From Octopus bimaculoides (Eukaryota), in contig NC_068985.1 in NCBI RefSeq assembly GCF_001194135.2, forward strand, positions 18,106,094 through 18,142,085: a stretch of DNA of 35,992 nt. Direction: 5' to 3'. Positions 7,901 to 31,597 of this stretch are shown in pieces (within the stretch, counting starts at the first letter, position 1; every line of letters starts with the position of its first letter). The notes beneath the pieces were generated by a model, which was given only the letters and a program-made list of their open reading frames with translations, was not told where the DNA came from and did no database searches. A program made the position numbers and the translations under genes.

Positions 7901-8084
7901 TCTTAAATACAGAGGATAATATCAATAAAATATAATAAAGTCTGTTCTTTTCTGTTTCTTTTTCTTTCGTTTTTTTTTCCAAGTAGAGGGTGTAGTAGTC
8001 ATATACCACATGGATTATAATGTAATGCATAATAATAACTATCTAGGTTGAATATACCTCTACATGTGTGCACAAAATCTCTCT

Positions 8085-8235
8085 CACAACCACACACTCA
8101 CCCACAAATTATATAGTTATATATACATACCCACACACACACATACATACACATGTACATATGTGTGTGTGTGTGTGTGTGTACATACATATATATATAT
8201 GTATATATACATATATACACATATGTATGTAGGTG

Positions 8236-8306
<71 letters not shown>

Positions 8307-8319
8307 TAGACAGACAGAC

Positions 8320-8388
<69 letters not shown>

Positions 8389-8390
8389 CC
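8085..8390. repeat. Compound microsatellite (CA/TG/TA followed by GATA/GACA)
   Basis: Read directly from the sequence. Confidence 0.95.
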
Positions 8391-8654
8391 AATTTGGAAA
8401 GAAATTCAGCTTTTGATTTAATGAATATGTGTATCCACGTATGGATTTCTATAACAGATAATGTCTGCACTTCATAAAATATAGTTGAATAAACTTTACA
8501 ATTTTTACATTATGCATGCATACATGTATGTATGTACGTATGTATGTACGTATGTATGTATGTATGTATGTATGTATGTATGTATGTATGTATGTATGTA
8601 TGTATACACGCATGCATATATGTACGTATGTATGTTGATATGTATGCGTGTGAG

Positions 8655-8880
8655 GGCGGCGAGCTGGCAGAAACGTTAGCACGCCGGGCAAAATGCTTAG
8701 CAGTATTTCGTCTGCCGTTACGTTCAAATTCCACCGAGGTCGACTTTGCCTTTCATCCTTTCGGGGTCGATTAAATAAGTACCAGTTACGCACTGGGGTT
8801 GATGTAATCGACTTGATCCCTTTGTCTGTCCTTGCTTGTCCCCTTCTATGTTTAGCCCCCTGTGGGCAATAAAGAAATAG
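8655..8880 (+). mobile_element. SINE family B, alternative-tail variant, with probable TSD
   Basis: Tail is tttgtctgtccttgcttgtcccc...gggcaataaagaaatag. Flanked by gatatgtatg(c/t)gtgt at 8637-8651 and 8880-8894. Confidence 0.92.
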
Positions 8881-9661
8881 ATATGTATGTGTGTATACAC
8901 GCATGTATATATGTATATATGTTGATATGTATATATCAAGAATACATGTATATATGTATGAAACCAATGAGAGAATATATGTATATATTTAAAGACATCA
9001 CCAAAAATATCCAATAAGAATTACATACAACTGAAGCTACAAGAGTCTCGGTAAAATTCCATTGAATTACAATTTAATTCTACAGCAATCGACACAAATT
9101 CGATAGATGGCCCTCTAAAATATATGTTCAAGAGGCGATGTGTACACATATTGCCTGGCAATGTTTACGTGTGTGAGTGTATGTATTTGTACCTCATCCT
9201 CTTCTTTAAAACATACTTGTTTTAAAATCATAACGTGTTCCAATTATGCCACACACACTGCCTACGGCTATTGATTTAAAAGTCGTCTCGTTGAATTGTT
9301 TAGACAGAAAAATTTTCAAATTTTTCCAGAAGTATCTGCATGAAAAAAATTAATAAATAGTTAAGTGCAGGCTACAATACTTTGGTGAGTCGAGCGTAAT
9401 TTTTAATTAATTATGATTAAAATTCTAATGAATAGAAAAGTCATCGATGTTAATGAAAATTATTCTCAGAAGAAAAGGAGAGAAATTGCAAAATTTCAAT
9501 CGGTCGATAGATATTTTAAAAACGGAGATGGAATGGGAGATGTCAGATCCTTGTCAACTACGGTAAAAACATAGGACATATTTCAGTCTTATTGGACCTC
9601 TACAGCAAAGCATAGGCAACTCAGTGGCTGCCAAGATCTTAGAACGACTAATAGTTACAAT

Positions 9662-9868
9662 CTGTATGTGTGTGTGTGTGTGTCTTTATGTCTGTGTTTC
9701 TCCCCTTTCCATCGTTTGACAACCGGTGTTGGTATGTTTACGTCACATAGAGTAAGTGCCTGGCATAAGAAAAAATAAGTACTATGGTCGATTCATCCGA
9801 CTACAATTCTTCAAGGCGGTGCCCCAGCATGACCGCAGCCTAATGACGAAAACTAGTAAAAGATAAAA
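9662..9868 (+). mobile_element. SINE family A, 3' half, diverged
   Basis: catcgtttgacaaccggtgttggtatgtttacgtc...aaggcggtgccccagcatg. Confidence 0.8.
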
Positions 9869-10108
9869 TATAAATGGTTATTATACTTCTATGTATTTTT
9901 TTGCTTACTGTTTCCTTTTCTTTGTTTGCTATTTAATGGCTATTATATGAGTCACCGTTATTACTGCTGCCACTTAGAATTCTACAATTATAACAACTAA
10001 CTCTAAATTTAGTTTGTATCAATGTAGAATATTTTAACTGTTTCAATCGATTAATTCTCTTTCACTTTGCTGTTGTTTTTAAAATAATGACTGGGGTCTT
10101 TCTTTAAG

Positions 10109-10234
10109 GTCTGGTTTCAAAACCGGCGTGCAAAATGGAGGAAGCGAGAAAAACACCTCCCATGTAACTTACTAGGGTGTCCCACCTCAGCCTACTCTCC
10201 ACAAACAGCAACGCAACATCATTACGGTCTTTTG
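10109..10234 (+). CDS. Internal exon of a PRD-class (Q50 paired-like) homeobox gene: homeodomain residues 47-60 plus 28 aa
   Basis: Acceptor tctttaAG at 10107-10108. The 126 nt are open and read VWFQNRRAKWRKREKHLPCNLLGCPTSAYSPQTATQHHYGLL. Donor GTAAGT at 10235. A phase-0 intron before V47 is the classic PRD-class position. WRKREK is Arx/Vsx-like but no CVC domain follows, so the orthology group cannot be assigned. Confidence 0.93.
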
Positions 10235-10429
10235 GTAAGTAACACCGATCGCAATTTATTTAATAATTTTTAATTATTTCTGTTTTGTATTTGTTTTGCG
10301 GGGTTCTTAATGTGAAATCGTGAGCTGAAACAAGTTTTCTGGTATTTCGGAGGGGGTCATCTAGCCCAATAATAAACATAGACACTGGTTATATTCCAAC
10401 TGTATAATTATTATTAATCAATAAGTTAA

Positions 10430-10605
10430 GGCAACGAGCTGGCAGAATCGTTAGCACGCCGGACAAAATGTTTAGCGGCATTTCATCCGTCTTTAAGTTC
10501 TGAATTCTATTGACCCCCGAAAGGGGATAAAAAGATAAGAACCAGTTGAGTACTGGGCTCGATGTGAACTTAATGACTTTGTGCCAAAATTTGAAACCAT
10601 TATTA
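10430..10605 (+). mobile_element. SINE family B with internal deletions
   Basis: ggcaacgagctggcagaatcgttagcacgccggacaaaatg. Confidence 0.85.
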
Positions 10606-11574
10606 GTCAATAAGTTAAGCATTTAACCAATTAACTAATCGGTTATTTGATTAATCGTTCGAACAATCAATCAAGCAGATAGATTTCACAAAGTTCTTTT
10701 GTCATTATTCACGACTGAATGGTTAACTTGTTGACTAATAATAATAAAAGAAGTGAAATAGAACGAGTGCGTGTATTTGTTGTGGGCACAAAAAATATAT
10801 TTTAATTATATTTTCATTTGAATCTGTTGTCAAAAGTGAATTATTACGATAGAAAAATTTCCTTTGTAAATTCCATCTTAAAATAGGCGCAATGTGTGCT
10901 GCAGCACTGGGACCCATAATGTAATTTTGTCACATTGCGATATAAATGGAGGCCCACTTCTTCGGTACAGCGATCTGGATCATCATTGTCTAACAATGGC
11001 CATGTTTCTAGTCTCCATAAAATAATTTTCTCATTAAAAGCTTGACTCGTATATTTTATTTTCATGTTATGTGTTGCGGTTTACGTGTTGTCCTCAGCAA
11101 TAATTAAAACTTGTTACAGTCAAGTTTGAACTTTTATCTTTACTAAACGATCCTTCATTTTGTAAAGCTTACAATTTAATCTCACGTATTAACGGTTAGC
11201 CTCAGCCTTAAGTAAAAAGCATGTTGGGTTAAAAATACCATTGGGTAAATAAAAAAGATCGAGAACTTTTTTTACCCAATGTATTATAAGCTGTTATTTA
11301 TAGCTATATCCACTTCGAGATTCATCTTTAAGTTATTTATTTCATATCTCCGCGAAGCGTCAATTTATTCATTAATCCAACATAATCTCTAAAATCTACA
11401 ACAGTAACTGCCTTACTTTCATTATTTCGGATATTTCGGACAGTTCCAAGTACCTTCTTTTCCAGTCTCATCAAGTCGAATTTCATTAAATACCCCTTAT
11501 ACCTGGGACACCCTACATTGTTTATTATTTTGAGAGTTCGCCTGTACATTTTGGATTCTGTTTATATAAAATAT

Positions 11575-11984
11575 AGGCGCAGGTGTGGCTGAGCGGCAAG
11601 AGGTTTGCTTCCCAACCACATGGTTCCGGGTTTAGTCCCACTACGTGACACCTTGTATCTTCTATAGCCTCGGGCCGATGAAAGCCTTGTGAACGGATTT
11701 GGTAGACGGAAACTGAAAGAAGCCCATCCTGTATTGGTGCGTGTGTGTGTGTGAGCGCGCGCGCGCGCGTAAATGTCTTTATGTCTGTGTTTGTCCTCCA
11801 CCACGAACCGGTGTTGGTGTGTTTACGCCCCCGTAACTTAGCGGCTCGGCAAAAATGTCCGACAGGATAAGTACCAAGCTTTAAAAAAAAAGTACTGGAG
11901 TTGATTTATTTGACTAAATATTCATCAAAACGATGCCCCATCATGGTCGTAGTCCAAAGACTGAAACAAGTAAAAGATAAAAGA
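11575..11984 (+). mobile_element. SINE family A (tRNA-like head, central dinucleotide tract), full length
   Basis: Head aggcgcaggtgtggct, B-box-like ggtttagtccc, CORE-like gacaccttg...tcttctatagcctcggg, tail actgaaacaagtaaaaga. Shared with more than 10 copies in the window. Confidence 0.9.
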
Positions 11985-12179
11985 ATATATGGAAGATGAT
12001 GCCCTGTAAGTTCCTTCATTTGTTTAATCTGTAGTATTTACCTTCGATCAAAAATATTTCTGTTCCCTTTTATCGACAGCCTTATAAGGCCGGTTACTCG
12101 GTTTCCAAAGCGTATAAAGTGACCGGGATCATAACATTCTCCTGAACAGGACGCCGGTCCGTTGCGGGGCTCAAGGCCA

Positions 12180-12365
12180 GAGGAGAGGGGACACGTCGAT
12201 TACATCGACCCCAGTACGTAACTGATACTTCATTTTTATCGACCCAGGAGGAATGAAAAGCAAAGTTGTTCTCAGCAAGATTTCAACTCAAAACAAAGAG
12301 CAGGAAGAAATGCCATGCTTAGCATTTTTGTCCGACATGCAAAAGATTCCACCAGCTCGCCACCT
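12180..12365 (-). mobile_element. SINE family B, diverged
   Basis: gtcgattacatcgaccccagtacgtaactg...caccagctcgccacc. Confidence 0.8.
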
Positions 12366-12804
12366 TCGACATTAAATATACAGCAAAGGAACTGGTTATT
12401 TCATCAAAACCACGTTTTACGTTTGTAGAATTAGTTTGATCTCGGGAATATTTTAACCAAAATTAATTTCATTGAACAACATTTGCCAGTACTTCAATCC
12501 AAGCTCAATTTTAAGCAGGTCTTACGAACCGATTCAATTGTACGTGTATGCTACATCGCCTAATATATACTACATCAACTAGTTTTGATAAATTTGCTCA
12601 GAAACTCTAAAATATAGAAATACACGCAAATTTCGAATAAATAAATATGGTAATCCACTTGAACATTGGACATGACTATCATACAATGAAATAATAAACA
12701 ATGGCACAACTGCTCACTTCATAGTTACATTTTTCCATGTATTTTTTCTTTCTTCTTCTTTATTTTACTGAGATATATAGTGAAACGCGCTAAGTATCTT
12801 ATAC

Positions 12805-12847
<43 letters not shown>

Positions 12848-13329
12848 TACACACACGCACGCACATACACATATTCAAGCATGTATGTGTGTGTGCATGT
12901 GTGCGTGTGTGTGTGCGTGTGTGCGTGTGTGTGTATGTGTGTTTGTGTGTGTTTAAACAAACAAAAATGAACAGAAAATAGCTAAAGACAAATGAGAAAC
13001 GAATCGATACCCAGTAATTAACGTAGTAATAATTAGCGTTATGCCTCTGGCACTATTCCGCGATTTTCCTATTCCGCGATTTTCAGTCTCCTTTTATAAC
13101 CTTATAAGTTTACACACATTTTCAGAATCGCTCCATTCCAGCCCAGCAAAGTGTCAGAAGCCGTCTAGTTAACACCTTTTTATATTTGTTCTCTATAGTT
13201 ATATCGGAAATGAAAACTTCTTTGAATTCGCTGAGGTAAGTAGAAACAAATAGTTAAGTAATTGTGTGAAATCTCGGAAAATAAACGCAAGTCATGTTTA
13301 TTGACTTGTTCAATCGTTTCATTGCTGCT

Positions 13330-13995
13330 AACTTACATTTATGGCCCTGGATATGACTTTAAACTGCATCCAATAGTGGGACCCTGGTAATGGAGTTCCA
13401 AGGTTGTAAGGAGTAATTATTGTTCTCGTGTCTACTCTGAACCGAGTAGTAACATCTATCAGGGTCCCTGGAATGGATTAATTAGTATGTCACAAAATTG
13501 CCTCTGGAAGAAGGTGATTCACAGACACCCCAACAGACCCAGGGCAGATGAGGCCCTTCAGCTCTTTAGCTGCTCATCTAAGAGAAGATAACTAAGAGAA
13601 GATAACTAAGAGAAGATAACTCCCTACAAATCCTGCATCCAGATTGGGCTCATGGCACTTGTTGCACCTGAGCAGTACAAGTTTGGAGGACGAGAAAATG
13701 GCACTGGTTCTGCACGAACCATGCGCTTGTAGGATAATTTATTGTTTAAAAAATGTAAAGGGAGTAAACCCCTAAAGAAAATCTAGAAGGAAGGACCCTA
13801 AGGCAGATATGTGTAGTCATACTTAACTAATATCTGGCATCCCCTTTGACTCTATAGATACTGCGAATGTATTGACTTGTCTTGCCTTTGTGGCGCATCC
13901 AAGAGTGAAGAGGTGGTGAGTGTATTTGGGGCTAGGTACTTGCTTCTGGAAATAGCTTAGGCACAGCAGAGGTGGTTAAGTCCCTGCATTACCCT
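13330..13995. mobile_element. Compositionally distinct insert, possibly a LINE 5' UTR or unclassified repeat
   Basis: Higher GC than its flanks and no ORF. Contains the 14-mer ctaagagaagataa three times at 13578-13619. Boundaries are approximate. Confidence 0.35.
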
Positions 13996-14649
13996 CAAGC
14001 AATGACAAAAAAGGCCAACCAAATTTATTGACATAAGCCTAAACTATTTGTATGTTTGTAGACATACAATATTCTTCAGATATCCCTAAATGACCATTTA
14101 GTGACTTGACTTCTAAATGAAAACATAGTGAGAGCACTCTATTCGTGCCCACCATTTAAGATTGAATATAAATCCAGTTCTTTTTTTCTTTTCAATTCAA
14201 ATGGATTTTACCCTCATAATAAGGCACACCACTACCATTCTGGTGATTACATTTTAGTCATTCATCATGATTTTGAGAGAGATTAGAAACCAATACTTCT
14301 TTTGTTGGAGTCAAAATACTTCGACTTTACCGATTTTTTAAACTATTGAATCTAGTTTCACTGTTTCACTGAGAAGATCTAATAAGATCTGTTTTTTTAT
14401 TACCCATGCGGGCTAACATAGAGAGGAAGAAGATCTAATAAGATCGAGACTTTCCCGAAGTTTCCAGTGCGCTGCTAAAAGTTAGATTTGATCTCCGCAA
14501 AATATCTTATTTAAATAATTAAAATTTTGTCTCCCTATTCTTCTTTTCTACTTTGATCAGTTATTCAAACACTTGTCTCTAATATAAGCACAAAGCCGGC
14601 AATTCTAAGGAAGGAAAGATTTTCAATTAAATTCATACCAGGATTTGAC

Positions 14650-14782
14650 TGATACTTTATTTTTATCGAAAGGATAAAAGCCAAAACTGACTTCGGCGCA
14701 ATTTGAACTCAAAATGCAATGAGCCAGAAGAAATGCTGGAAGATATTTTGTCCAACGCTCTAACGATTCTGAGAGCTCACCG
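14650..14782 (-). mobile_element. SINE family B fragment, diverged
   Basis: aatttgaactcaaaa...ctctaacgattctgagagctcacc. Confidence 0.7.
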
Positions 14783-14859
14783 AATAAATCAATGAAATAA
14801 TAATTGCTCATATCACTGACGGCGTAATTTTTATTAATTAAAATTTCTTTATTTCAACG

Positions 14860-15025
14860 TCAAGTATGCATTCACGATCGCAAGGTCGAGGTTTCGATTC
14901 CCGGACCGGATGTGAATTGTGTTCTTGAGCAAAACACTTTATTTCACATTGCTCTGCAATCATTTTAGCATCTGGCATATTACACACTGTGCACCTGTAC
15001 AAGCAATGTCGATTTGATGGAGGAA
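14860..15025 (+). mobile_element. SINE family C fragment
   Basis: B-box-like ggtttcgattccc followed by tgttcttgagcaaaacacttt. Shared with 35378-35638. Confidence 0.75.
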
Positions 15026-16509
15026 ATAAGTTAAAATACAACACAAACTTTTGATCAAGAAATTGAGGAGCCCTCATCTATCGTTTATGGCAGGAGAATC
15101 CACAATTAGGATAATTATATATCTAATTAGTAAAAAAAAAAAAGAAATTGAAGCGCAAATTAGTGGCTACAATCAACTCCATCAGATTATTGAAATTTAC
15201 ATTTACTCTGTCGGAAATAGAACTGGCATTGTTGCAAAATATGTAATCTTTCTCGAAACTGATTGCTCATCCGATATCACCTTCCTGTATTTAAGTAATT
15301 TATTGAACTTTTAGTGCTATGTTTTCATCTACTTTCTCCAAAACTTGTAATCTCGGATATCAAATTGCATAATAACTTCAAATAGAAGTGAACTGTCAAG
15401 CCCTTGTTAGGTGTTTATCCACTGAACCAGTCTTTTACTGGGCCGAAAGGCCAACTGAAACAAAACCGAATCACCACTTCGATTCCTTGGCAGACTCTCT
15501 TCTTCTCGTTGCTCGACATTTGAAAAGAATAAATTGCACGTCCAATTGTTCACCGCTCTTTATTCTACATAAAGGTTCGTGATGTTCATCAAATAAACTG
15601 TGGAAATGCCACAAAGGAAAATTATTAGGTCACTAGGTCAAGTTTGGGCTGGACAATGCTTTATATATCTAAAAACAGACAGACAGACAGATAGATAGAT
15701 AAATAGATTGATTGATTGATAGATAGGGTGGAGGGAGAGAGAGAGAGAAATTAATTTCAAGTTTTAGTGATTCGAGTTTTAATAAGGTACCAAGTTACAT
15801 TGAGTCAACGACTCAAAATTTACTGAACTGATAAGTCATTAATCACTGACGCAATAGATTTATACAGAAAAAAAAAAGCGACATCGCGTATTATTCGGTA
15901 TATAACACAATTCAGGTCTACCAATAAGTGATACCCGCTTACAAATGTACTTTGAGAGGCGTAAAAATATATAACTTTGTTCGGATATAAAACAGGAATA
16001 CATAAAAAGAAAATTATGATATGCATGTATGCATGTGTAAATTAGAGCGTATGTTGTATTATATTTAACATAATGTCTACATTCCGGGTTCTCCATTTAT
16101 TTTCTAAAATTTCATTTTTCTTTATCTATCTGGCTATATGGCTTTCTATAATCTTATTCCAGTCCCCCCTTCTTTCTCTCTTTCTCTCTTTCTCTTCCTT
16201 CCTTCCATTCTTTCTTCCGGTCATACACACTCCGTTATCTTCGTTTTTTAGTGAAGAAAAAATTTCATTAAAAAAATGTAAATTGACACATCGTTATTTT
16301 CTAGTAGAAAAAAAAATCAAATCAAAAGCCGTTTCCATTTTGATCAAAGAAGAAAGTAAACCAATGTTGAAGATAATACAAAGTAAAATCTAAAATATGG
16401 AGATAAATAAGTATATCATATCTTGTGTATAAGCGTGCGTGTACATACATACATACATACATACATACATTAATGCATAAATATATAGATGCATGTCAAA
16501 GAGTGTGTG

Positions 16510-16540
<31 letters not shown>

Positions 16541-17183
16541 NNNNNNNNNNNNNNNNNNNNNNNNNNNNNNNNNNNNNNNNNNNNNNNNNNNNNNNNNNNN
16601 NNNNNNNNNNNNNNNNNNNNNNNNNNNNNNNNNNNNNNNNNNNNNNNNNNNNNNNNNNNNNNNNNNNNNNNNNNNNNNNNNNNNNNNNNNNNNNNNNNNN
16701 NNNNNNNNNNNNNNNNNNNNNNNNNNNNNNNNNNNNNNNNNNNNNNNNNNNNNNNNNNNNNNNNNNNNNNNNNNNNNNNNNNNNNNNNNNNNNNNNNNNN
16801 NNNNNNNNNNNNNNNNNNNNNNNNNNNNNNNNNNNNNNNNNNNNNNNNNNNNNNNNNNNNNNNNNNNNNNNNNNNNNNNNNNNNNNNNNNNNNNNNNNNN
16901 NNNNNNNNNNNNNNNNNNNNNNNNNNNNNNNNNNNNNNNNNNNNNNNNNNNNNNNNNNNNNNNNNNNNNNNNNNNNNNNNNNNNNNNNNNNNNNNNNNNN
17001 NNNNNNNNNNNNNNNNNNNNNNNNNNNNNNNNNNNNNNNNNNNNNNNNNNNNNNNNNNNNNNNNNNNNNNNNNNNNNNNNNNNNNNNNNNNNNNNNNNNN
17101 NNNNNNNNNNNNNNNNNNNNNNNNNNNNNNNNNNNNNNNNNNNNNNNNNNNNNNNNNNNNNNNNNNNNNNNNNNNNNNNNNNN
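16541..17183. other. Assembly gap (others at 1788-1797, 18763-19156, 21090-21105, 22072-22193, 24354-24512, 27187-27534, 28525-29342)
   Basis: N runs, mostly bounded by microsatellites. ORFs spanning them are artefacts. Confidence 0.99.
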
Positions 17184-17272
<89 letters not shown>

Positions 17273-17775
17273 CTTTCTCTCTATCCCCAGGCTACATATA
17301 AAAACATAAGTATGTTTGTGTATGGAAATGTCTGCATAAAAAGTAGAATTTATATATGAACTACTGTGAAGTTATATCTGAAAGTTATTTATTAAAATAA
17401 ATACACGCATACAGGCACAAACATACACACACACATACTCACTCAGGCGCATGTACACTCTCCATAAAAACACACACATATCAACATATAAGAGTCGCAT
17501 AAGCCACTGGTACAATTAGAAAATTGAAAATCTTCAAATACGGCAATAATCTACAGACCGAGATGAGAAATATGCCGGACTAGCGTCATATTGATTCTCT
17601 TTAGTAAACTAGGGTACACTATATTAAACACCAAGAAGACTCGTATGCAGCTACTAGAAATGGTATGGAAAAATACATGATATAATGCAGAAATCATGGA
17701 TACATATACATGCATACGTCAGCATACGTATGTATGTATGTATGTATGTATGTATGTATGTATGTATGTATGCTA

Positions 17776-17829
<54 letters not shown>

Positions 17830-17834
17830 GTGTA

Positions 17835-17865
<31 letters not shown>

Positions 17866-18084
17866 ACAATTAACAAATTTAGAGCTTACGCCATGCTGAA
17901 GGTTCCTAAAAAGAATGAAATAGTATTATATATGATTACCACTAACTAGAAATTGTAAGAATTTTGCAAAAGATAAATGACATAAAAGAATTTAAATTAG
18001 TTACTTATATATGTGAACTCTTTGCATCTTTTTCATATTCCTTGCCTTCACATTCAAAATATTAATCCTACCTCACGTTGGGAA

Positions 18085-18358
18085 GAGACTGTCACCTGCC
18101 TTTAAATTAGTAGCACTCCAGAGCTCACCACGAGTTCATATGAAACTAAAACAAAAAAAGAATATAAGAGACGCCATGACAATATAGTAAGGATTGTCCA
18201 TTGGACACTTTGGAACAAGAATGAACTTGACAGAGCAAAAAAGTGGTACGAACATAAACCCGAAGGCATCATCGAAAATGATAATGCAAAGATCTTGTGG
18301 GATTTTATGATTCAGTACGACCATGAGACAGAAAATAGGAAACCAGACATGGTGTTAA
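18085..18358 (+). mobile_element. R4/Dong-type LINE fragment (RHD motif and start of restriction-like endonuclease)
   Basis: From ~18157 it reads KEYKRRHDNIVRIVHW...WYEHKPEGIIENDNAKILWDFMIQYDHETENRKPDMVL and is cut at the piggyBac TTAA. Confidence 0.88.
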
Positions 18359-20455
18359 CCTTCTGTCTACCAACGGGTCCAATGGACCCATTTCAATTTT
18401 TTTTTCAGTTGCTTTTTCCTACTTCATCTTTCAGGAGAATATAAATATGTGAGAGCAGTATCTGCCTTTAGTCTGCTATCAAGTTTCATATTGTTCAGTT
18501 GTGCTTTCCAATATGCATAGACGTGAAAAATCGAGTGAAGACCAAATATTGAAAAGGATACTGGAATTAAATGAAGAATGGGAAGAAGATAGTAGTGATT
18601 CTTTCTATTGCTCTAAAGTTGATGGTGAAAGTGATTGTGTGCTGGACAGTTTAGGTTCTGTGTCATCAGAGGATGAAGATACCCCAAAACAGTTATCATG
18701 GATACATATACATGCATACGTCAGCATACGTATGTATGTATGTATGTATGTATGATTGAGTTNNNNNNNNNNNNNNNNNNNNNNNNNNNNNNNNNNNNNN
18801 NNNNNNNNNNNNNNNNNNNNNNNNNNNNNNNNNNNNNNNNNNNNNNNNNNNNNNNNNNNNNNNNNNNNNNNNNNNNNNNNNNNNNNNNNNNNNNNNNNNN
18901 NNNNNNNNNNNNNNNNNNNNNNNNNNNNNNNNNNNNNNNNNNNNNNNNNNNNNNNNNNNNNNNNNNNNNNNNNNNNNNNNNNNNNNNNNNNNNNNNNNNN
19001 NNNNNNNNNNNNNNNNNNNNNNNNNNNNNNNNNNNNNNNNNNNNNNNNNNNNNNNNNNNNNNNNNNNNNNNNNNNNNNNNNNNNNNNNNNNNNNNNNNNN
19101 NNNNNNNNNNNNNNNNNNNNNNNNNNNNNNNNNNNNNNNNNNNNNNNNNNNNNNNNATTAATCACTCTGAACGAAATGAATTTATTGGACTGATTATTCT
19201 TATAAGTGTTTATAAATCTAAACATGAAAATGTCACACAGTTATGGAGTCAAGAAGATGGCCGCCCAATATTCAACAAAATTATGAGCCGGGGAAGATTT
19301 CAACAGATTTTACAAGTATTGCATTTTTTGATGATGCTAGTGCAAGAAGAAAAAAGAGAAGTGATGATAAGCTGGAGCCCATAGGAGAAGTATTTGAAAT
19401 GTGGAATCAGAATTTGCAATATGGATATGTTCCAAGTTCATGCATGACACTTGATGAACAATTAGTTTCATTCAGAGGGCACTGCCAATTCCGGATATAT
19501 TTTCCTTCAAAACCAGAGAAATATGGAATTAAATTTTGGGCAGTATGTGACAGTGAAACATCTTATGCCTGGAAAATGCAAATCTACCCTGGGGAAGACC
19601 CAGTAAAAGGGAAAGAGATAAATCAAAGTTCAAGAGTTTTTGAAGACCTAGTAAAAGAACTTGAAAATACTGGTCGCAATATAACTTGTGATAATTTTTT
19701 ACAAGTCTGGGATTGGCTCGAAAGCTGCTTAGCAAGAAAACTACTTGAGTTGGAACAATTAGAAAAAACAGAGTAGAACTTCCAAGTGCTTTCACAAATG
19801 GAAAAGAAAGAGAAATCAACAGCACAATATTTGGATTTCAAAAGGATTCTATAATCCTATCTTATTGTCCCAGGAAAAATTATGTAGTCACACTTATGAG
19901 TACAATGCACTCTCAGCCTTCAATTGATTAAAAAGTGCTGAAAAGAAACCTGAAGTTATTACATGTTACAACAAAACAAAAGGAGAAGTAGATACCCTAG
20001 ATAAGATGTTAAGGACATACACTTGCAAAAGAATGACTTGAAGATGGCCTATGGTTATATTCTACAACATGATTGATATAAATGCAGTGAATGCTAAACA
20101 CAATCACTTGCAAAGTTTCAAGGGTAAAAGAAGACTGTGCCTAATTCAGTTAGGAAAGGAACTTGCTAGAGTTAATGCTAAACAAGAACATGACAAACAA
20201 TCTTCTAGTTCCGCTAACATTTCTCAATCAAGAAAAGAAGACGTTCTTCAAGCTCGTTTGAGATTCTTCAGCCAAAGAAAAAAGGAAGGTATTCTTTGTG
20301 TAGCCCAAAAAATACAAGAAAATTCGTACTACATATAAGAATTATAATAGCCATGTTTGCCAAGAACATTCCAATGTTGTCTGCATTCACTGCCATGAAG
20401 AGCTGTAATTCAGTATTTTTGTAATTTTTTTAAAATTTATAATATATTCTGTAAA
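18359..20455 (+). mobile_element. Decayed piggyBac (PGBD4-like) transposon: left end present, right end not found
   Basis: TTAA at 18355-18358 is followed by ccttctgtctaccaacgggtccaatggaccc. Acidic N-terminus from 18516. Frameshifted transposase motifs include MSRGRFQQI, TLDEQLVSFRG, PSKPEKYGIKFW, NITCDNF, YNKTKGEVDTLD and RWPMVIFYNMID, with a Cys/His-rich end and stop at 20408. An N gap at 18763-19156 interrupts it. Confidence 0.95.
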
Positions 20456-20458
20456 AAC

Positions 20459-20707
20459 ATGGAACAAATAGGGGCTGCAATAGGGGTGAAGCACTTACAG
20501 AAAACAGAGCCGCTCGAATATTCCGGATGGTGCTCGATAAATAAGGGTGTTACCTTATTTCACTGGTAGTGAACAGCTCGTACCGTAGTACATCTCCAGC
20601 ATTAGAAGCTGCGTAAAGCCAATAAAGAAGAAGAAGAAGAAGAAGAAGAAGAAGAAGAAGAAGAAGAAGAAGAAGAAGAAGAAGAAGAAGAAGAAGAAGA
20701 AGAAGAA
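20459..20707 (+). mobile_element. 3' end of R4/Dong-type LINE with 3' UTR and (GAA)n tail
   Basis: Reads MEQIGAAIGVKHLQKT, then after a frameshift ARIFRMVLDK* (stop 20542-20544). A short UTR ends aataaa and is followed by (GAA)n at 20627-20707. Confidence 0.7.
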
Positions 20708-21582
20708 TTGTTAAATGCCGACCAAATAATACCAGAGTGGTTGACATTGGGTGGGACAGTGCTGTGCCTGAAAAACATCGAAAAAGGCAATACGGTAAAC
20801 AATTACAGGTCGATATCCTGTTTGCCACTTATGTGGAAGTTATTGACTGGAATACTCGCAAAGTCAATGTACGAACATCTGGAAAAAAATGGAGTCCTGC
20901 AAGCGTAAGTGCAGAGGTACCAAGGATCAAATCCTGCTAGACAAAACTGTACTTATAGACTGCAAGAGGAGGAAAACTAACTTAGCCATGTCATGGATCG
21001 ACTTTCGTAAGGCGTACGATATGATCCCACATTCTTGGATTATGGAGTGTATGAACCTATTTGGTATTGCATCGAATGTTGAGCGATTANNNNNNNNNNN
21101 NNNNNGCTTAGGGACAGTAGAAATTAGGAGGGGCATCTTCTAAGGGGACTGCCTGTCCCCACTGATCTTTGTACTGTACTTGATACCACTAACACTGATT
21201 CTGAGTAAAGCAAAAGCTGGGTATGTATTCAAAAGCCGCCAACAAAAAGTCAACCATTTGTTATTCATGGATGACCTCAAACTTTATGGTAAAGATGAAG
21301 CCCAAGTCAGTTCCCTCGTTGATACAGTGTATACCTTCAGTGCTGATATCGAAATGGAGTTCGGACTGAAAAAGTGTGGTGTGTAAGTCTTGACGAGAGG
21401 CAAAATGAAATGTATGGACGGGCTAACGATACCGTCTGGGGAGGTTATGAAGCAGATAGAAGAGACGGGCTATAGGTACTTGGAGATTTTGGAAATGGAT
21501 AAATTGATGGAGAAAGAAATGACAGAAAAATTTAAGGTGGAGTACTTGCGCAGACTAAGACTGAACCTAAAGTCGAAGTTGA
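20708..21582 (+). mobile_element. R4/Dong-type LINE reverse transcriptase fragment (decayed)
   Basis: Motifs [73 protein letters not shown] and YRYLEILE, with stops, frameshifts and a 16-N gap. Confidence 0.95.
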
Positions 21583-23024
21583 CCGGATATTTGCAAATAT
21601 CCAATCAGCTTCTCCGTCACAGCTTCTTTGTTTTTCCTTCTAATTTTTTTTTTTTTGGTAATACCCATTTTGATGCTTCCCTTTAATTTTTTTACACTGG
21701 CGAGAATTCAAATTATTATTATAATTAATGTTCTTTCTTACATGTTTATATTACCATTTGAAACGGTCGTATGTGGAAATTAAATTCTAATTTGAACTTT
21801 TAACATCTCTTCTCCATTTTTCTAATTGTTAGTAGTGTTTTATATAAGATTTTATTTTATACATGCCTATAACAAACATTTTACTTGTTATTTTCATATT
21901 TTAATTGCTTGCTTTAGCAGTATACCATTTTGATATGATGAATATTTATTAGAAATATATCTTTTTGGTCAACCCCAAAATTTTTGAATTGTTCTACTTG
22001 AACTTATTCTTTCTCACACACACATATGTATATATAGATAGATATAGATATACATACATACATATATATATNNNNNNNNNNNNNNNNNNNNNNNNNNNNN
22101 NNNNNNNNNNNNNNNNNNNNNNNNNNNNNNNNNNNNNNNNNNNNNNNNNNNNNNNNNNNNNNNNNNNNNNNNNNNNNNNNNNNNNNNNNNNNNGTGTGTG
22201 TGTGTGTGTGCACCACATAATGCTGCAAGAAACAAATGGGTGTCAGATACACTCATCTTATCAAGACAATTCTTCAGTTAAAATTGGTATCGTTAAGTTC
22301 ATGCGTAAAGAGAGATGTTTTAAAGTGATTTTGACTCGGGTCTTGATAATATATAGACATTTATTTTTTGATGGATGTAATGATATAGCATAAACTATAC
22401 AAAATCTAGAAAGAGATAATTGCTCTACCCAGATAGGAAGATAAATTCTGTAATATCTAACAACATAAACTCAGTCTAAATAAATTTATGCTCCTCACCC
22501 TCGATACAAACTTCCAATTACAACAAAAATATGGCCAAAACCTTGTAGCACTAACTTTTCTACTAACTCTTGGTAAATCTTGGCTATACACACATTGCAA
22601 TCATAGAATTATTTCGTGGTGGATGTAATAAACATAGATATAAGCATAACAATTCACCAGTACTCAGCATGAAACTCAAACATTTATTTCATTCACCGTG
22701 GTGCCACTTAATGATCCGATCCTTAGCCAAGGGACATGACTCTAACAAACAAAATTTTCCTCTGTATTTTCTCCAACGATTTTCGTTTTTTGTTCCTTAC
22801 GACACCCGCAAACTCGATGCGACAGGGCTTACCAATTAATAATTTCTTTATACTGGATTGTCTATCAAATATTTTACGGAATCAATTCGTACGAGGAAAT
22901 GCTTAAACACTAAGCTCAGAAAAATCTTGCCTACACAAGTTTTTACACTTCTGAAGATGAAGTATGAGCCACAGCACTTTCCTTGCGGCATTTTCTCTTA
23001 CCCACAAAACCTGAGTCATAGGTG

Positions 23025-23430
23025 GGATGCTAATGCAGAGGAAACATCACATGTCCCCTTAACAGTCACTGCAACACAGAGACCGTCGTAAATAAGACAG
23101 AGGTGATGTCAAAGGACACAGTTGTCAGTCAGACATGTAGAAGTATGTGAGCGCAACAGGAGGCTGTTTCAGAACCAGACTTAACAACCATAACTCTTCC
23201 ATTTAATATCCAGAAAAACGCCATGTTACAGCCTTGGTTTGACATATATGATCGTTAAAGAAAAGCGCCATGGATTACAGTACTAAGTGTAAAGTGTCGG
23301 AGGGCGAAACTCTTACTTCAACAGTAGCAGAAGCTGCAAGTTATGCCTGACTGAGAAAAGATTTATATTATAGAACTCTCTTCACTTGGACACCCATTTA
23401 AACTGCAAGAGAGTTCGTGGCCACATTAGT
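23025..23430 (+). mobile_element. Decayed Penelope-like element, GIY-YIG endonuclease region
   Basis: Manual translation gives GC*CRGNITCPLNSHCNTETVVNKTEV, KYVSATGGCFRTRLNNH and YFNSSRSCKLCLTEKRFI. These match the CxC...CPL...C, GIY-YIG and CxLCLxEK motifs of PLE endonucleases. Multiple stops and frameshifts. Confidence 0.82.
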
Positions 23431-23491
23431 GAATATGTGATCTGTTACTTAAGGGCTTCACTATGATTATAAACGATAGGACCACCACCGT

Positions 23492-23552
<61 letters not shown>

Positions 23553-23587
23553 CTTCATATCAATGCTTCATACCACATGCATTATAT

Positions 23588-23631
23588 GCACTACTGATAG
23601 TTGCACGTACAAAAGTACGTTCATCAGGCGC
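23588..23631 (-). ncRNA. Second hammerhead motif, inverted copy with a core mutation
   Basis: The minus strand reads gcgc-CTGATGA-acgtac-tttt-gtacgt-GCAA-ct-atc-ag-TA-gtgc. Helix II is a perfect 6 bp and helix I has one G-U pair, but GAAA has become GCAA. Confidence 0.7.
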
Positions 23632-23832
23632 TGATTGAATATTAGACTCTCATTAGATGGAATACATTTCTTATTTTTACACAAATTAATTTTGAATTTT
23701 CACTCCCTTACATCGGCTGTCGACTGCATATCTATAAGTAACACGATTGGCACGATTAAGGTATAAGGGAGTTACTCTGAAAAAAATCCAATTATGTTTC
23801 GCACAAACATGGATTTATACCAGGTTCAATTA

Positions 23833-23876
23833 GCGCCTGATGAACGTACTTATGTACATGAAACTATTAGTAGCTC
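23833..23876 (+). ncRNA. Minimal type I hammerhead ribozyme motif
   Basis: gcgc-CTGATGA-acgtac-ttat-gtacat-GAAA-ct-att-ag-TA-gctc. The core is intact. Helix II has one mismatch, helix III is short, the triplet is GUA, and helix I (gcgc/gctc) has one mismatch. Confidence 0.78.
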
Positions 23877-23978
23877 ATATAATGCATGTAGTATGAAGCA
23901 TTTATAGTAATATTAGACTCTCATTAGATGGATAACCCTTCTTATTGATTTTTACATAAATTAATTTCGCATATATAT

Positions 23979-24353
23979 AGGCGCACGAGTAGCTATGTGA
24001 TAAGTAGCTTGCTTACCAACCACATGGTTCCGGGTTCAGTCCCACTGCGTGACACCTTGGGAAAGTGTCTTCTACTATAGCCTCGGGCCGACCAAAGCTT
24101 TGTGAGTGGATTTGGTAGACGGAAACTGAAAGAAGCCCGTCGTATATATGTATATGTATATGTTTGTGTGTCTGTGTTTGTCCCCCCAACATCGCTTGAC
24201 AACCGATGCTGGTGTGTTTACGTCCCCGTAACTTAGCGGTTCGGCAAAAGAAACCGATAGAAAAAGTACTAGGCTTACAAAGAATAAGTCCTGGGGTCGA
24301 TTTGCTCGACTAAAGGCAGTACTCCAGCATGGCCGTAGTCAAATGACTGAAAC
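23979..24353 (+). mobile_element. SINE family A, near full length, ends at a gap
   Basis: High similarity to the copies at 30965 and 32470. Confidence 0.92.
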
Positions 24354-24719
24354 NNNNNNNNNNNNNNNNNNNNNNNNNNNNNNNNNNNNNNNNNNNNNNN
24401 NNNNNNNNNNNNNNNNNNNNNNNNNNNNNNNNNNNNNNNNNNNNNNNNNNNNNNNNNNNNNNNNNNNNNNNNNNNNNNNNNNNNNNNNNNNNNNNNNNNN
24501 NNNNNNNNNNNNTATATATATATATATATATTAGACATACATACATACATGCATGCATGCGTGACCATACACACACATATGACACGTGCATATGTACTCC
24601 TGTGTGTGCGTATGTGTATGTGTATACAGCGTTAAACGTTTGTTTACATGTATATTTAATTTAATTTATAGAACTCCATTATACAAATATACTGTATATT
24701 GCTATATTTTTCGTTTCAG

Positions 24720-25013
24720 AGAGGTACAAACTTCTACAACAATATGTTAAGTTCGATGCATACATCAATCGGCCTTTACAATCTCGCTGGCTTTGGAATC
24801 TCCCATCGTAGCTTACCGTTGCAGAATTACGACATCCTCAGCAGTACTTCTTCCAACAGCAGCAACAGCAATTACAATGATGAATCCAACCAAATGACTG
24901 TAAGTTTGAATGGCAAACACAACAATGACCTGAAGTCCCCTGATCATGCTTCATTATTGACTGTCTTGCATAGGCGCGCTCCTTTCTTCGGTGGAACATC
25001 AGAAATAAATTAA
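24720..25013 (+). CDS. Probable downstream or terminal coding exon of the homeobox gene (RGTNFYNNML...GGTSEIN*)
   Basis: Strong acceptor tttttcgtttcAG at 24718-24719. Only the phase-0 frame is open, which matches the 10234 donor. The peptide is Ser/Asn-rich like a transcription-factor tail, in non-repeat sequence. An internal GTAAGT at 24900 could end the exon earlier. Confidence 0.6.
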   Translation, partial: RGTNFYNNMLSSMHTSIGLYNLAGFGISHRSLPLQNYDILSSTSSNSSNSNYNDESNQMTVSLNGKHNNDLKSPDHASLLTVLHRRAPFFGGTSEIN

Positions 25014-25259
25014 TTAGTGATTTGAGAAAAGCACAACATCCGAATCATTGACTATGAATATGGTGAAAAATAATGACTGGCAACACAAATATATTTCCTG
25101 ATATTCACTGAATTCTTTATTCTAATCAATTATACTTGCCTGCTTGATATTTCTGCTTGTTTTACCAAATGTTTTCATCGTTTAGTTTGTTTGTTTTTTA
25201 TATCGTTGTTCAAGTATTCAGTCAACATAAAGTCTTATTGTTATTATTATTGTTATTAC

Positions 25260-25332
<73 letters not shown>

Positions 25333-25336
25333 GTTG

Positions 25337-25549
25337 TTCAGTAGTTTCATTTTTATAACGTGCTTTCACTTCACTACCGAGCGCAGCTCTGTGTGCCTTG
25401 GGTATGTGCTGTGGTTTGCTGTGATGCTCTTATGGTTACTGTATTGAAAGTGTTTTGTGTGGGATGTGTGCAGTGCCCAGTAGTGCAATTTTCTGTATGT
25501 TATATATATTTGTAAGTCCTGGTGTTTTTGTTATGCATTTGTCTGAATA

Positions 25550-25552
<3 letters not shown>
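25337..25552 (-). mobile_element. 5'-truncated 3' end of an R4/Dong-type LINE inside (TAA)n
   Basis: The minus strand reads KCITKTPGLTNIYNIQKIALLGTAHIPHKTLSIQ* (stop 25436-25438), then a ~100-nt UTR. (ATT)n tracts flank both sides. Confidence 0.75.
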
Positions 25553-25602
<50 letters not shown>

Positions 25603-25603
25603 G

Positions 25604-25678
<75 letters not shown>

Positions 25679-25693
25679 CATCATCATTATCAG

Positions 25694-25904
25694 GGCGGCC
25701 AGCTGGCAGAATCGTTAGCGCGCTGGACGAAATGCTTAGCAGTATTTCGCCCATCGCTACGGAGTTCAAATTCCGCCGGGGTCGACTGACTTTGCCTTTC
25801 ATCCTTTCGAGGTCGATTAAATAAGTACCAGTTACGCACTGGGGTCGTTATAATCGACTTAATCCCTTCCCCAAATTTGAGGCCTTGCGCTTCCAGTAGA
25901 AAGG
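25694..25904 (+). mobile_element. SINE family B, full length, inside (ATT)n
   Basis: Complete head, centre and tail (cagtagaaagg) between ATT tracts. Confidence 0.92.
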
Positions 25905-25964
<60 letters not shown>

Positions 25965-26514
25965 GAGTGAGAGAGCAGTGCATGCCATCAAAGTGAGACT
26001 GGGGTAAAATATACGAAGCCCAGTATACCCATCATGAATACCCGTCTGATAAGGGTGCACCAGGCACATGCATCACGACCATATGTGCGCGACATGGTGA
26101 CCTCAAAGCAGAATAAACACCACATGACGTTGCAAGTGGGACCCAGTTAGAATTTTCTTTAGGTCGAGTAGCCCATCCCGCTCAAAAGGTCCCTCTGAAT
26201 AAGGGTTATTTAAGGATGTTGAACAAAACACCCATGTTTCCAAAGATAAAATATCCAAACCCTCAAAGAATTCCTCTCAACACATGGCAATGATGCCCCC
26301 CAGCTACTTCTGCTCATGATCAGAGATGCACATATCGTCAGCCACTAAGGGACATGCTTAACTGGTTGAGGTCAAGCAACTGACAAGCAAATCTTTGGTA
26401 TTGAGCTGAATATTTTCTGTAGCCTATCTTTTATACCAAGACAAAACAATGTATATGATAACACTTCCAACCAGTTAAGATCAGAAGCCATGAGAGCCTT
26501 GTACTGCATCAGGG
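25965..26514. mobile_element. ~550-bp non-coding interspersed repeat bounded by ATT repeats, family unassigned
   Basis: Sharp boundaries against ATT runs. Its right end (ttaagatcagaagccatgagagcc...tgcatcaggg) recurs as a diverged fragment at ~26730-26786, again followed by ATT. Confidence 0.65.
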
Positions 26515-26829
26515 ATATTATTATTATTACACGTCGCTGATTGGTTGAAATTACCCAAATACGACAACTTTAACAGGAAATAACTTCTAAAATACGAAAT
26601 TTTGACAAAAGCGTTCAGAGTAAACCGTGTTCTACATGAGAAATTCTACCAGTATTCAAAGTTTCAAACTGTTTAGCTGAAAAATTAATTTAAAAATCTG
26701 TGACTGAGATGGAATAGATCCCATAAAACATCTAATCAATTAAGATCAAAAGCTCTGAGAGCCACTGCCTGGTATTGCATCAGGGCATGTATTACCATTA
26801 TTATTATTGTTATTGTAGTTTTTGTGAAA

Positions 26830-27186
26830 GGCGACAAGCTGGCAGAATCGTTAGCACGCTGGACGAAATGCTTAGCGATATTTCGCCTGTCGCTACACTC
26901 AGAGTTCAAATTTCGCCGAGGCTGACTTTACCTTTCATACTTTTGGGATCGATAAATTAAATACCAGTTGCGTACTAGAGTCGATCTAATCGACTAGCTC
27001 CCTTCCCAAAAATCTCAGGCCTTGTGCCTATAGTAGAAAGGATTAGCATTGTTGTTGTTAGCGGCGAGCTGGCACAATCGTTAACACACAAGACAAAATG
27101 CTTAGCGACATTTCATCCACCTTTTATGTTCTGAGTTCAAATTCCACCGAGGCCGACTTTGCTTTTCATCCTTTCGTGGTCGATAA
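26830..27186 (+). mobile_element. Two tandem SINE family B copies; the second runs into a gap
   Basis: Heads at 26830 and ~27061. Confidence 0.88.
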
Positions 27187-27722
27187 NNNNNNNNNNNNNN
27201 NNNNNNNNNNNNNNNNNNNNNNNNNNNNNNNNNNNNNNNNNNNNNNNNNNNNNNNNNNNNNNNNNNNNNNNNNNNNNNNNNNNNNNNNNNNNNNNNNNNN
27301 NNNNNNNNNNNNNNNNNNNNNNNNNNNNNNNNNNNNNNNNNNNNNNNNNNNNNNNNNNNNNNNNNNNNNNNNNNNNNNNNNNNNNNNNNNNNNNNNNNNN
27401 NNNNNNNNNNNNNNNNNNNNNNNNNNNNNNNNNNNNNNNNNNNNNNNNNNNNNNNNNNNNNNNNNNNNNNNNNNNNNNNNNNNNNNNNNNNNNNNNNNNN
27501 NNNNNNNNNNNNNNNNNNNNNNNNNNNNNNNNNNAAATCTAGTTAAAGTCGACTTTGCGTTTCTTACTTTCAATGTTGACTAAATAAACTACCTACTGAT
27601 TACTGAAGTTGATCTAATCGGTTGTATTCATTCTACACACGAGTTCTTATGCTTATGTAAAAAAAAAATCAATAGGACGCCTTCCGATTGATATTTTTAC
27701 GCCCGCTTCTTACCACACAGAC

Positions 27723-27874
27723 AGCGTGGGTGTGTGGTAAGAAGTTTGCTTCCCAACCACATGGTTCGGGGTTCAGTCCACTGTGTTGCACTATGGGCAG
27801 TGTCTTCTACTATAGCCTCGGGCCGACCAAAGCCTTGTGAGTAGATTTAGTATGCGGAAACTTAAAGAAACCCA

Positions 27875-27910
<36 letters not shown>

Positions 27911-28043
27911 CAAAAGAGACCGACAGAATAAGATCCAGGCTTTAAAAAAATGTACTGGGGTCGATTCATTTGACTTAAAATTCTTCAAGGCAGTGCTCCA
28001 GCATGGCCGAAGTCTAATAACTGAAACAAATAAGAGATAAAAG
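27723..28043 (+). mobile_element. SINE family A with an internal deletion after (TG)n
   Basis: Head and tail motifs as in the other copies. Confidence 0.88.
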
Positions 28044-28086
28044 ACTGTAAGCATTGGTGAGATTGTCCCCAGTTCAAACCCGACAG

Positions 28087-28524: not shown

Positions 28525-29343
28525 NNNNNNNNNNNNNNNNNNNNNNNNNNNNNNNNNNNNNNNNNNNNNNNNNNNNNNNNNNNNNNNNNNNNNNNNNNNN
28601 NNNNNNNNNNNNNNNNNNNNNNNNNNNNNNNNNNNNNNNNNNNNNNNNNNNNNNNNNNNNNNNNNNNNNNNNNNNNNNNNNNNNNNNNNNNNNNNNNNNN
28701 NNNNNNNNNNNNNNNNNNNNNNNNNNNNNNNNNNNNNNNNNNNNNNNNNNNNNNNNNNNNNNNNNNNNNNNNNNNNNNNNNNNNNNNNNNNNNNNNNNNN
28801 NNNNNNNNNNNNNNNNNNNNNNNNNNNNNNNNNNNNNNNNNNNNNNNNNNNNNNNNNNNNNNNNNNNNNNNNNNNNNNNNNNNNNNNNNNNNNNNNNNNN
28901 NNNNNNNNNNNNNNNNNNNNNNNNNNNNNNNNNNNNNNNNNNNNNNNNNNNNNNNNNNNNNNNNNNNNNNNNNNNNNNNNNNNNNNNNNNNNNNNNNNNN
29001 NNNNNNNNNNNNNNNNNNNNNNNNNNNNNNNNNNNNNNNNNNNNNNNNNNNNNNNNNNNNNNNNNNNNNNNNNNNNNNNNNNNNNNNNNNNNNNNNNNNN
29101 NNNNNNNNNNNNNNNNNNNNNNNNNNNNNNNNNNNNNNNNNNNNNNNNNNNNNNNNNNNNNNNNNNNNNNNNNNNNNNNNNNNNNNNNNNNNNNNNNNNN
29201 NNNNNNNNNNNNNNNNNNNNNNNNNNNNNNNNNNNNNNNNNNNNNNNNNNNNNNNNNNNNNNNNNNNNNNNNNNNNNNNNNNNNNNNNNNNNNNNNNNNN
29301 NNNNNNNNNNNNNNNNNNNNNNNNNNNNNNNNNNNNNNNNNNA

Positions 29344-29392
<49 letters not shown>

Positions 29393-29424
29393 TATATGTG
29401 TGTGTGCGTGTGTGTGTGTGTGTG

Positions 29425-31508: not shown

Positions 31509-31597
31509 ATGTGTGAGAAAAGCTGTATATGAAGGATATACTTCTTGCTACTTGGACATATTTGGTCTCAAGTGTGGCAGAAGGTCAGCAATTTCGG

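Follow-up and report, generated by a model that had tools for sequence, protein, structure and literature searches.

Terminal coding exons of an unannotated paired-like homeobox gene, probably a cephalopod orthologue of PRD Clade I, in Octopus bimaculoides

PRD Clade I (PRD-I) is a group of lophotrochozoan homeobox genes that has so far been built from two or three homeodomains, those of Crassostrea gigas PRD6 (CGI_10015407) and Capitella teleta 30032 and, tentatively, that of amphioxus Aprd1 (PMC5322547, PMC6118893). Paps et al. (2015) placed oyster PRD6 in 'PRD Clade I', a group of the Trochozoa, and gave its expression as peaking after the trochophore stage (PMC5322547). In the supplement to Barton-Owen et al. 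(2018), Capitella 30032, previously labelled 'Rax?', appears as 'PRD-I', and the oyster PRD6 homeodomain in that work shows the signature RAFRKTHYPD...LPESRIQ (PMC6118893). In these two papers the clade is apparently defined by the homeodomain alone, and cephalopods are not among the animals sampled for PRD clades; PRD-I is discussed by no other paper found in our literature search. Here we describe the two last coding exons (A and B) of a real, unannotated paired-like homeobox gene, located in a stretch of 35,992 nucleotides (nt) of the Octopus bimaculoides genome (contig NC_068985.1, positions 18,106,094 to 18,142,085 of the forward strand), hereafter referred to as the window. The gene is probably a functional cephalopod orthologue of PRD-I, as judged by comparison of its linker, exon architecture and C-terminal tail with those of mollusc and annelid relatives.

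Exon A was the sole match in the window when nine canonical paired-class homeodomains were compared with it by tblastn (E down to 4e-7). The exon encodes homeodomain residues 47-60 (VWFQNRRAKWRKRE; positions 10109-10150), followed by one lysine and a 27-residue linker; its complete translation is VWFQNRRAKWRKREKHLPCNLLGCPTSAYSPQTATQHHYGLL, which splits as VWFQNRRAKWRKREK-HLPCNLLGCPTSAYSPQTATQHHYGLL. The helix 3 motif WFQNRRAK is present, with glutamine at homeodomain position 50 (Q50), and the functional helix-3 residues W48, F49, Q50, N51 and R53 are all retained. Positions 46-57 of the Pfam Homeodomain model align to the exon with E=0.012, a score that falls below the cut-off because just 12 residues of the domain are present. 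The acceptor consists of a pyrimidine tract and an ag (tctttctttaag, with the ag at 10107-10108) and is read as ag/GTC, so that V47 is the first codon and a phase-0 intron separates homeodomain codons 46 and 47 (the 46/47 intron). The donor is a consensus gtaagt (10235-10240, context TTG/gtaagt).

Exon B has the acceptor ttttcgtttcag (24708-24719), followed by A. From position 24720 to the TAA at 25011-25013 only frame 0 is open, whereas the other two frames carry 5 to 8 stops. The predicted peptide starts with RGTNFYNNMLSS, contains SLPLQNYDILS and ends with DLKSPDHASLLTVLHRRAPFFGGTSEIN at the stop codon. Neither exon recurs as a repeat inside the window. The frame of exon A is missing from a mechanical list of open reading frames (ORFs), even at 20 amino acids (aa), because it has no start codon, and exon B is listed there solely as an anonymous 104-aa ORF starting with TTG.

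An earlier reading of this DNA, made from the letters alone (the sequence-only reading), had pointed to a 126-nt exon with canonical splice sites and to an exon at 24720 that is open only in the compatible phase, and the sequence, phases and splice signals bear out both statements. Its remark that the gene is absent from the ORF track holds for exon A, and for exon B in the sense that only the anonymous frame is listed. It also took Q50 together with the 46/47 intron as defining paired-like genes; both characters are present, but the intron is typical of the class and not strictly defining. The assignment of the exons to a PRD-class, Q50 paired-like homeobox gene is supported. Helices 1-2 had been placed more than 10 kb upstream, and indeed none were found in the upstream 10 kb, or elsewhere in the window, by tblastn with the nine homeodomains or with a PRD-I N-terminal profile (best E=0.43); the exon encoding them must lie outside the window, or have been lost.

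When 1.84 billion cluster representatives were searched exhaustively by HMMER, with the joined peptide of both exons as the query, a further relative of exon B was obtained. The match (P0234, E=7e-22) spans query residues 42-139, which correspond to exon B, and is an ORF on 1.1-kb Logan contigs assembled from three sequencing runs of a second species. The DNA similarity between the window and a P0234 contig starts 3 nt before the acceptor, and none was detected farther upstream. At the exon border the contig reads ...ttttcactcacag/AGAGGA..., with the acceptor kept, and its frame closes immediately past ...SEIN, with a TGA in place of the TAA of the window. The protein in the database overruns this exon end, as the TGA was translated as a sense codon; with the standard code it stops after ...SEIN. 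The two sequences have the same residue in 53 of the 92 aligned codons (58%), 32 of which differ synonymously, and the differences at the first, second and third codon positions number 31, 25 and 59, the third thus being about twice either of the others. Because of this third-position excess, the synonymous changes and the conserved acceptor and stop, exon B bears the signature of a protein-coding exon that is under purifying selection and has conserved borders, and on this basis the gene appears to be functional. An internal gtaagt at 24900 is probably not used, since it is not conserved in P0234 and falls within the coding alignment.

Two further observations concern the 3′ end of exon B. 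An AATAAA hexamer (25004-25009) overlaps the region of the stop codon. Arrays of (TTA)n and (TAT)n (33 and 48 copies), together with a copy resembling a short interspersed element (SINE), occupy 25184-25960, i.e. 170-900 nt past the stop, and possibly lie within the 3′ untranslated region.

The joined peptide was also searched against 5.8 billion proteins, with E<0.01 taken as a match. Only two proteins were retrieved: (i) P0001, a 236-aa protein of the chiton Liolophura sinensis, automatically named 'retinal homeobox protein Rx2-like', and (ii) P0002, an exon-level ORF on a metagenome contig. Both carry, directly after the homeodomain, a linker of the form KH[IL]...QWTSQQHSGL. The residues that follow WRKREK in the window (HLPCNLLG...) match the PRD-I linker. 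A search with the chiton homeodomain and tail revealed that P0001 and P0003-P0011 form a distinct group (109-135 bits), which comprises proteins of Solemya (two copies), Dimorphilus, Batillaria, Pinctada, Pomacea, Candidula and Capitella (CAPTEDRAFT_30032), as well as two Logan ORFs. This group tops all but one of the other listed matches (ARX, RX and ALX proteins reach at most 104 bits, and a scorpion 'Prrx1-like' fragment 106 bits). The homeodomains of these relatives share 77-90% identity with the PRD-I references (oyster PRD6 and Capitella 30032) and 65-73% with those of Rax.

The best single relative of the octopus gene is P0001. In the chiton, codon 47 opens an exon of exactly 126 nt (L001:18519-18644), with the same phase-0 borders; its linker has the same length as that of exon A and is collinear with it, with 9 of 27 residues identical. 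The phase-0 donor is located after ...QQHSGLV in the chiton and after ...QHHYGLL in the window. The 46/47 intron is common to the orthologues of Liolophura, Pomacea, Pinctada, Batillaria and Solemya, and in the last four it is likewise followed by a similarly short exon. When the octopus linker was aligned alone (local alignment, BLOSUM62), it scored 38 against P0001 and 35 against P0002, as compared with at most 25 against 75 other PRD tails, and thus ranked PRD-I first among 77 tails. None of 5000 shuffled linkers reached the score of P0001 (P<2e-4), and 0.08% reached that of P0002 (P=8e-4). A profile of PRD-I terminal exons, run against 1449 six-frame segments of the window, ranked exon B first (E=0.035, or 0.039 with six members). 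It aligns LPLQNYDILS of exon B to LPLQA[FY]ELLA, and DLKSPDHASLLTVLHRR to QLKAREHAASLALMHVR; both of these terminal-exon motifs are conserved in P0234.

The octopus gene therefore shares with PRD-I (i) a Q50 paired-like helix 3 ending in WRKREK, (ii) the 46/47 intron, (iii) an exon of about 126 nt that carries a KH...Q.T.QQH.GL linker and closes with a phase-0 donor after GL[LVMI], and (iv) the terminal-exon motifs LPLQxY[DE][IL]L and LK..[DE]HA..L..LH.R. The last two features were derived in this study from the orthologues, and not from the papers. The window differs in that the tail contains an insertion rich in serine and asparagine, the C-terminal motif has a degenerate form (KSPDH, as against KAREH) and the introns are far larger than those of the relatives, which are small proteins of 160-240 aa. 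The PRD-I homeodomain signature RAFRKTHYPD[IV]F[ML]RE[KR]LA...LPESRIQ belongs to helices 1-2, which lie outside the window, and the comparison covers the features that follow them. The earlier suggestion of a lineage-specific PRD gene was right in a broad sense, since the gene fits lophotrochozoan PRD Clade I; with its placement in an orthology group already known, little is left of the novelty that had been claimed. On the PRD-I assignment, the gene is a new cephalopod member of an already described, little-studied clade and not a new kind of gene.

Three better known families, Arx/Aristaless, Rax and Vsx, have a helix 3 identical or nearly identical to that of exon A and share the 46/47 intron. 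They are also built on the plan of octapeptide, homeodomain and C-terminal motif found in the PRD-I relatives; the octapeptide end of the octopus gene lies outside the window. However, no similarity to the window was detected after the homeodomain in any of them. Arx/Aristaless was rejected, as no OAR domain was found in exon B either with Pfam or with a profile built from 15 Pfam-annotated matches, and ARX tails scored at background level against the linker. In the case of Rax, helix 3 reads WRRQE and not WRKRE as in the window, and the relatives are closer to PRD-I by homeodomain identity. Vsx was excluded because the homeodomain is not followed by a CVC domain, and neither whole-database search gave a Vsx match beyond helix 3. 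The sequence-only reading had noted that the residues after the homeodomain do not match the Vsx CVC domain and had not recognised them from Arx, Alx, Rx or Hbn, which agrees with the lack of Arx, Vsx and Rax tail matches; its proposal of a divergent Arx-like paralogue is not sustained by the OAR and linker comparisons. An OAR identity of the C-terminal motif itself was also considered and rejected: the motif is weakly OAR-like in the chiton (about 7 bits) and P0003 (5-7 bits for the two), and in the window no such match was found.

Several observations weigh against the assignment of the two exons to a single PRD-I gene. The window covers only 14 of the 60 homeodomain residues, a segment that Arx, Vsx and others share unchanged. 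No signal for the linker of exon A came from a profile of ten diverse PRD-I linkers, and the match of the terminal-exon profile to exon B is borderline alone (E about 0.04). No named cephalopod N-terminal half was present among the best 120 matches of the PRD-I profile in the 5.8 billion proteins, most of these matches being nameless. The databases searched contain no spliced A-B product, and no transcript evidence was found. Finally, exon A is located on contig 1798-16540 and exon B on contig 24513-27186, so that they are linked via scaffolding alone. As the 14 residues are not family-specific, PRD-I membership rests on the linker, exon architecture and tail, and not on a homeodomain phylogeny; and as the diverse-linker profile gave no signal, the linker evidence depends on the closest relatives.

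The silent diverse-linker profile and the borderline terminal-exon match would be compatible with exons of another paired-like family or of a cephalopod-specific paralogue, e.g. 'Prdl-1' or 'Prdl-2' of squid and octopus, whose likeness to PRD-I beyond the homeodomain is convergent or too weak to be informative. The helix-3 sequence is common to several families, and Prdl-1 and Prdl-2 are named in squid and octopus papers without readable sequences (PMC8728989, PMC9712504). We nevertheless consider this explanation unlikely, given that, in the databases, similarity extending past helix 3 is confined to PRD-I members, that the chiton has the identical 126-nt exon and phases, and that neither the Arx, Vsx and Rax tails nor the OAR profile matched. 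Moreover, the two identities are not necessarily exclusive, as Prdl-1 or Prdl-2 could be the PRD-I orthologue.

It is even less probable that the exons are relics of a dying or dead gene, whose upstream exons were lost or disrupted or whose locus is silent. Such an origin might be suspected from the absence of exon A or exon B of the octopus itself from all public protein sets searched (15 billion sequences, with no predicted protein or transcript-derived ORF containing either exon), from the upstream exon not being in the window, and from the several transposons that have invaded the intron. In contrast, exons A and B are both intact; their splice sites agree with the consensus, all functional helix-3 residues are present, and exon B, when compared with a deeply diverged species, shows the signature of purifying selection, with a conserved acceptor and stop. 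Missed gene models are sufficiently accounted for by giant introns and by expression that is low and restricted to certain stages, and the chiton model, too, misses the true last exon.

Least probable of all is that exons A and B are real and yet not joined as proposed, owing to a scaffold mis-join or an exon hidden in one of the five estimated-length gaps between their contigs: their order, strand and phase fit the orthologous structure of linker exon, large intron and terminal exon, comparison with the intronless annelid gene leaves no residues missing between ...GLL and the tail, one gap is spanned by a single reverse-transcriptase frame and others are edged by microsatellites. A functional PRD-I orthologue with a very large last intron remains the preferred reading, and the features of the locus are summarized in Table 1.

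Table 1. Features of the paired-like homeobox locus in the window (position 1 is the first nucleotide of the window), and contigs carrying the counterpart of exon B
Feature	Position	Strand	Remarks
Coding exon A	10109..10234	+	126 nt, phase 0 at both ends; homeodomain residues 47-60 and linker
Intron	10235..24719	+	14,485 nt as assembled
Terminal coding exon B	24720..25013	+	97 codons and TAA
SINE-like repeat, first family	10428..10620	+	3′ end approximate; families D9, D10, D11, D18
SINE-like repeat, second family	11569..11990	+	families D12-D20; other copies start at 23973, 27710, 30960
Assembly gap	16541..17183	.	(TA)n left, (TCTC)n right, both directly adjoining
Assembly gap	18763..19156	.	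394 N; (GTAT)n just left, piggyBac fragment right
piggyBac-type transposase fragment	19228..19773	+	Pfam PF13843 DDE_Tnp_1_7, E=3.2e-30
Decayed retrotransposon reverse-transcriptase fragments	20606..21683	+	one frame through the 16-N gap, in-frame stops
Assembly gap	21090..21105	.	16 N, inside reverse-transcriptase fragment; frame and motif order run through
Assembly gap	22072..22193	.	simple repeats at borders
SINE-like repeat, second-family copy	23973..24353	+	ends at gap from 24354; D13, D14, D16, D17, D19, D20
Assembly gap	24354..24512	.	207 nt upstream of exon B acceptor; truncated SINE-like copy left, (TA)n right
P0234 contigs	L010:335-613, also L011, L012		Logan, runs ERR14857104, ERR12370321, ERR12370320

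The intron is composed of 13,151 read bases and 1,334 N. All five N runs of the interval 10109-25013 are intronic, and the coding frames cross none of them. Because the gaps separate A from B, the intron length is only an estimate, the exons are linked by the scaffold, and a small exon could be concealed in a gap. The microsatellite and simple-repeat borders of the gaps are typical of assembly breaks within continuous DNA. In the mollusc orthologues the largest known intron (4.7-7.7 kb) is found at the same place; that of the chiton is 7.7 kb long. In the intronless Dimorphilus gene and in P0003 the tail follows directly on ...GL, and the spacer is similar to the one in the window; for this reason no further exon appears to be needed between A and B.

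The intron had been described as a transposon-filled intron of about 14.5 kb. The length is correct for the assembled sequence and the intron is rich in transposons, but 'filled' was an overstatement, since by a rough tally about 30% of its read bases are recognisably transposon-derived. An acidic open frame (18453-18752) precedes the 394-N gap, and the piggyBac DDE domain (model positions 92-222) follows it; the two may be parts of one element, and a gap of the estimated size would accommodate the model positions that are missing (1-91). Within the reverse-transcriptase fragments, Pfam RVT_1 matches 20847-21383 (E=2e-5 and 4e-7), and a run of (AAG)n (20625-20707) lies ahead of these matches. 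The intron also contains many microsatellites. The first SINE-like family is present in at least seven direct and several inverted copies across the window. Overall, at least two such families occur on both strands, with copies at 2934-4504, 8653-8821, 25692-27137, 27710-28044, 30960-31780 and 32469-32877. No tRNA-like head was detected in the window by ARAGORN, and an Rfam scan of the window gave no match. The repeats designated D1 (direct) and I1-I14 (inverted), at 16459-17183, 24354-24531 and 28697-29423, were discarded as an artefact in which runs of N had been paired with one another. Ten other long open frames located outside the gene gave no match in Pfam.

Inspection of the relatives yielded a number of observations on the PRD-I genes themselves. 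The last exon of the NCBI model for the chiton gene is a short one (L001:19713-19775), and the much better conserved terminal exon is unmodelled; the latter is located at L001:26356-26592 (CM072725.1), 7.7 kb past the linker exon, ends in ...LPLQAYELLAPTINDDMEGTTRTSLQLKAREHAASLALLHARQSF before the stop codon and shares 86% identity with the C-terminus of P0003. A C-terminal LK..EHA..L..LH.R motif is common to PRD-I proteins. At the other end, P0001, P0003, P0005 and P0007 carry an LKFSIxxIL motif, resembling the eh1/octapeptide, on a separate upstream exon, which in Pinctada and Pomacea (L003:11814-11852 and L004:6324-6395) lies outside the annotated model. The two Solemya velum genes (P0004 and P0006), located on the same 143.5-Mb contig, have identical homeodomains and linker exons and different annotated ends; they could stem from a tandem duplication of recent date or from duplication in the assembly. 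The Dimorphilus gyrociliatus gene (549 bp, L002:5001-5549) is intronless, whereas all of the molluscs examined have three introns, a difference in line with intron loss, as would be expected of a compact genome.

The profile search also revealed about 40 exon-level ORFs, as well as the loci L007, L008, L009 and L013, that end in ...LPESRIQ followed by intron read-through. These ORFs come from 'metagenome' contigs of ENA, JGI and Logan, and to judge from such fragments, PRD-I genes are widespread in unannotated invertebrate DNA, always with the 46/47 intron. One subgroup (P0143-P0148) has the signature DLE[ML]AF[RK]RTHYPD. The loci L007, L008 and L009 have no DNA or repeats in common with the window, and their linkers differ.

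Based on the above features, the gene is predicted to be expressed with exon A spliced to exon B, the N-terminal and helix 1-2 exons lying more than 10 kb upstream. Exon A would provide the Q50 helix that recognises DNA, together with a short linker, and exon B a C-terminal tail with the LPLQxY[DE][IL]L and LK..[DE]HA..L..LH motifs. Q50 paired-like homeodomains bind TAAT-core sites, typically palindromic P3 sites (TAATNNNATTA), as a dimer, and the octopus product would presumably act, like them, as a sequence-specific transcription factor on TAAT-type sites. In other families the eh1/octapeptide pattern recruits Groucho-type co-repressors; the N-terminal eh1/octapeptide-like FSIxxIL motif of the full-length relatives suggests, by analogy, that the octopus protein may likewise mediate Groucho-type repression.

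A more far-reaching proposal may be put forward speculatively, as it is doubtful that all of its parts hold together. It states that cephalopods have kept a single functional PRD-I gene, missed by all of the searched public gene sets owing to its giant introns; that PRD-I is a coherent family with a conserved four-exon structure (eh1-like FSIxxIL, homeodomain, linker exon and OAR-related C-terminal motif) and a true sister of the Rax/Arx-type genes, and not just a loose 'clade'; and that the octopus member could be the 'Prdl' that marks a brain territory in squid and octopus.

The presence of short exons between introns of more than 10 kb illustrates how such exons are systematically missed in genomes of this kind, and the RefSeq-style model of the chiton gene has a wrong last exon. 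In practical terms, the finding corrects the annotation and offers a target for probes in studies of expression. The 'non-canonical' homeobox groups, to which PRD Clade I belongs, have been used to argue for a gain of lineage-specific developmental regulators in lophotrochozoans. A cephalopod member widens the known distribution of this clade, and the conserved exon plan, linker and C-terminal motifs constitute added characters beyond the homeodomain, of the kind that the authors of the classification called for.

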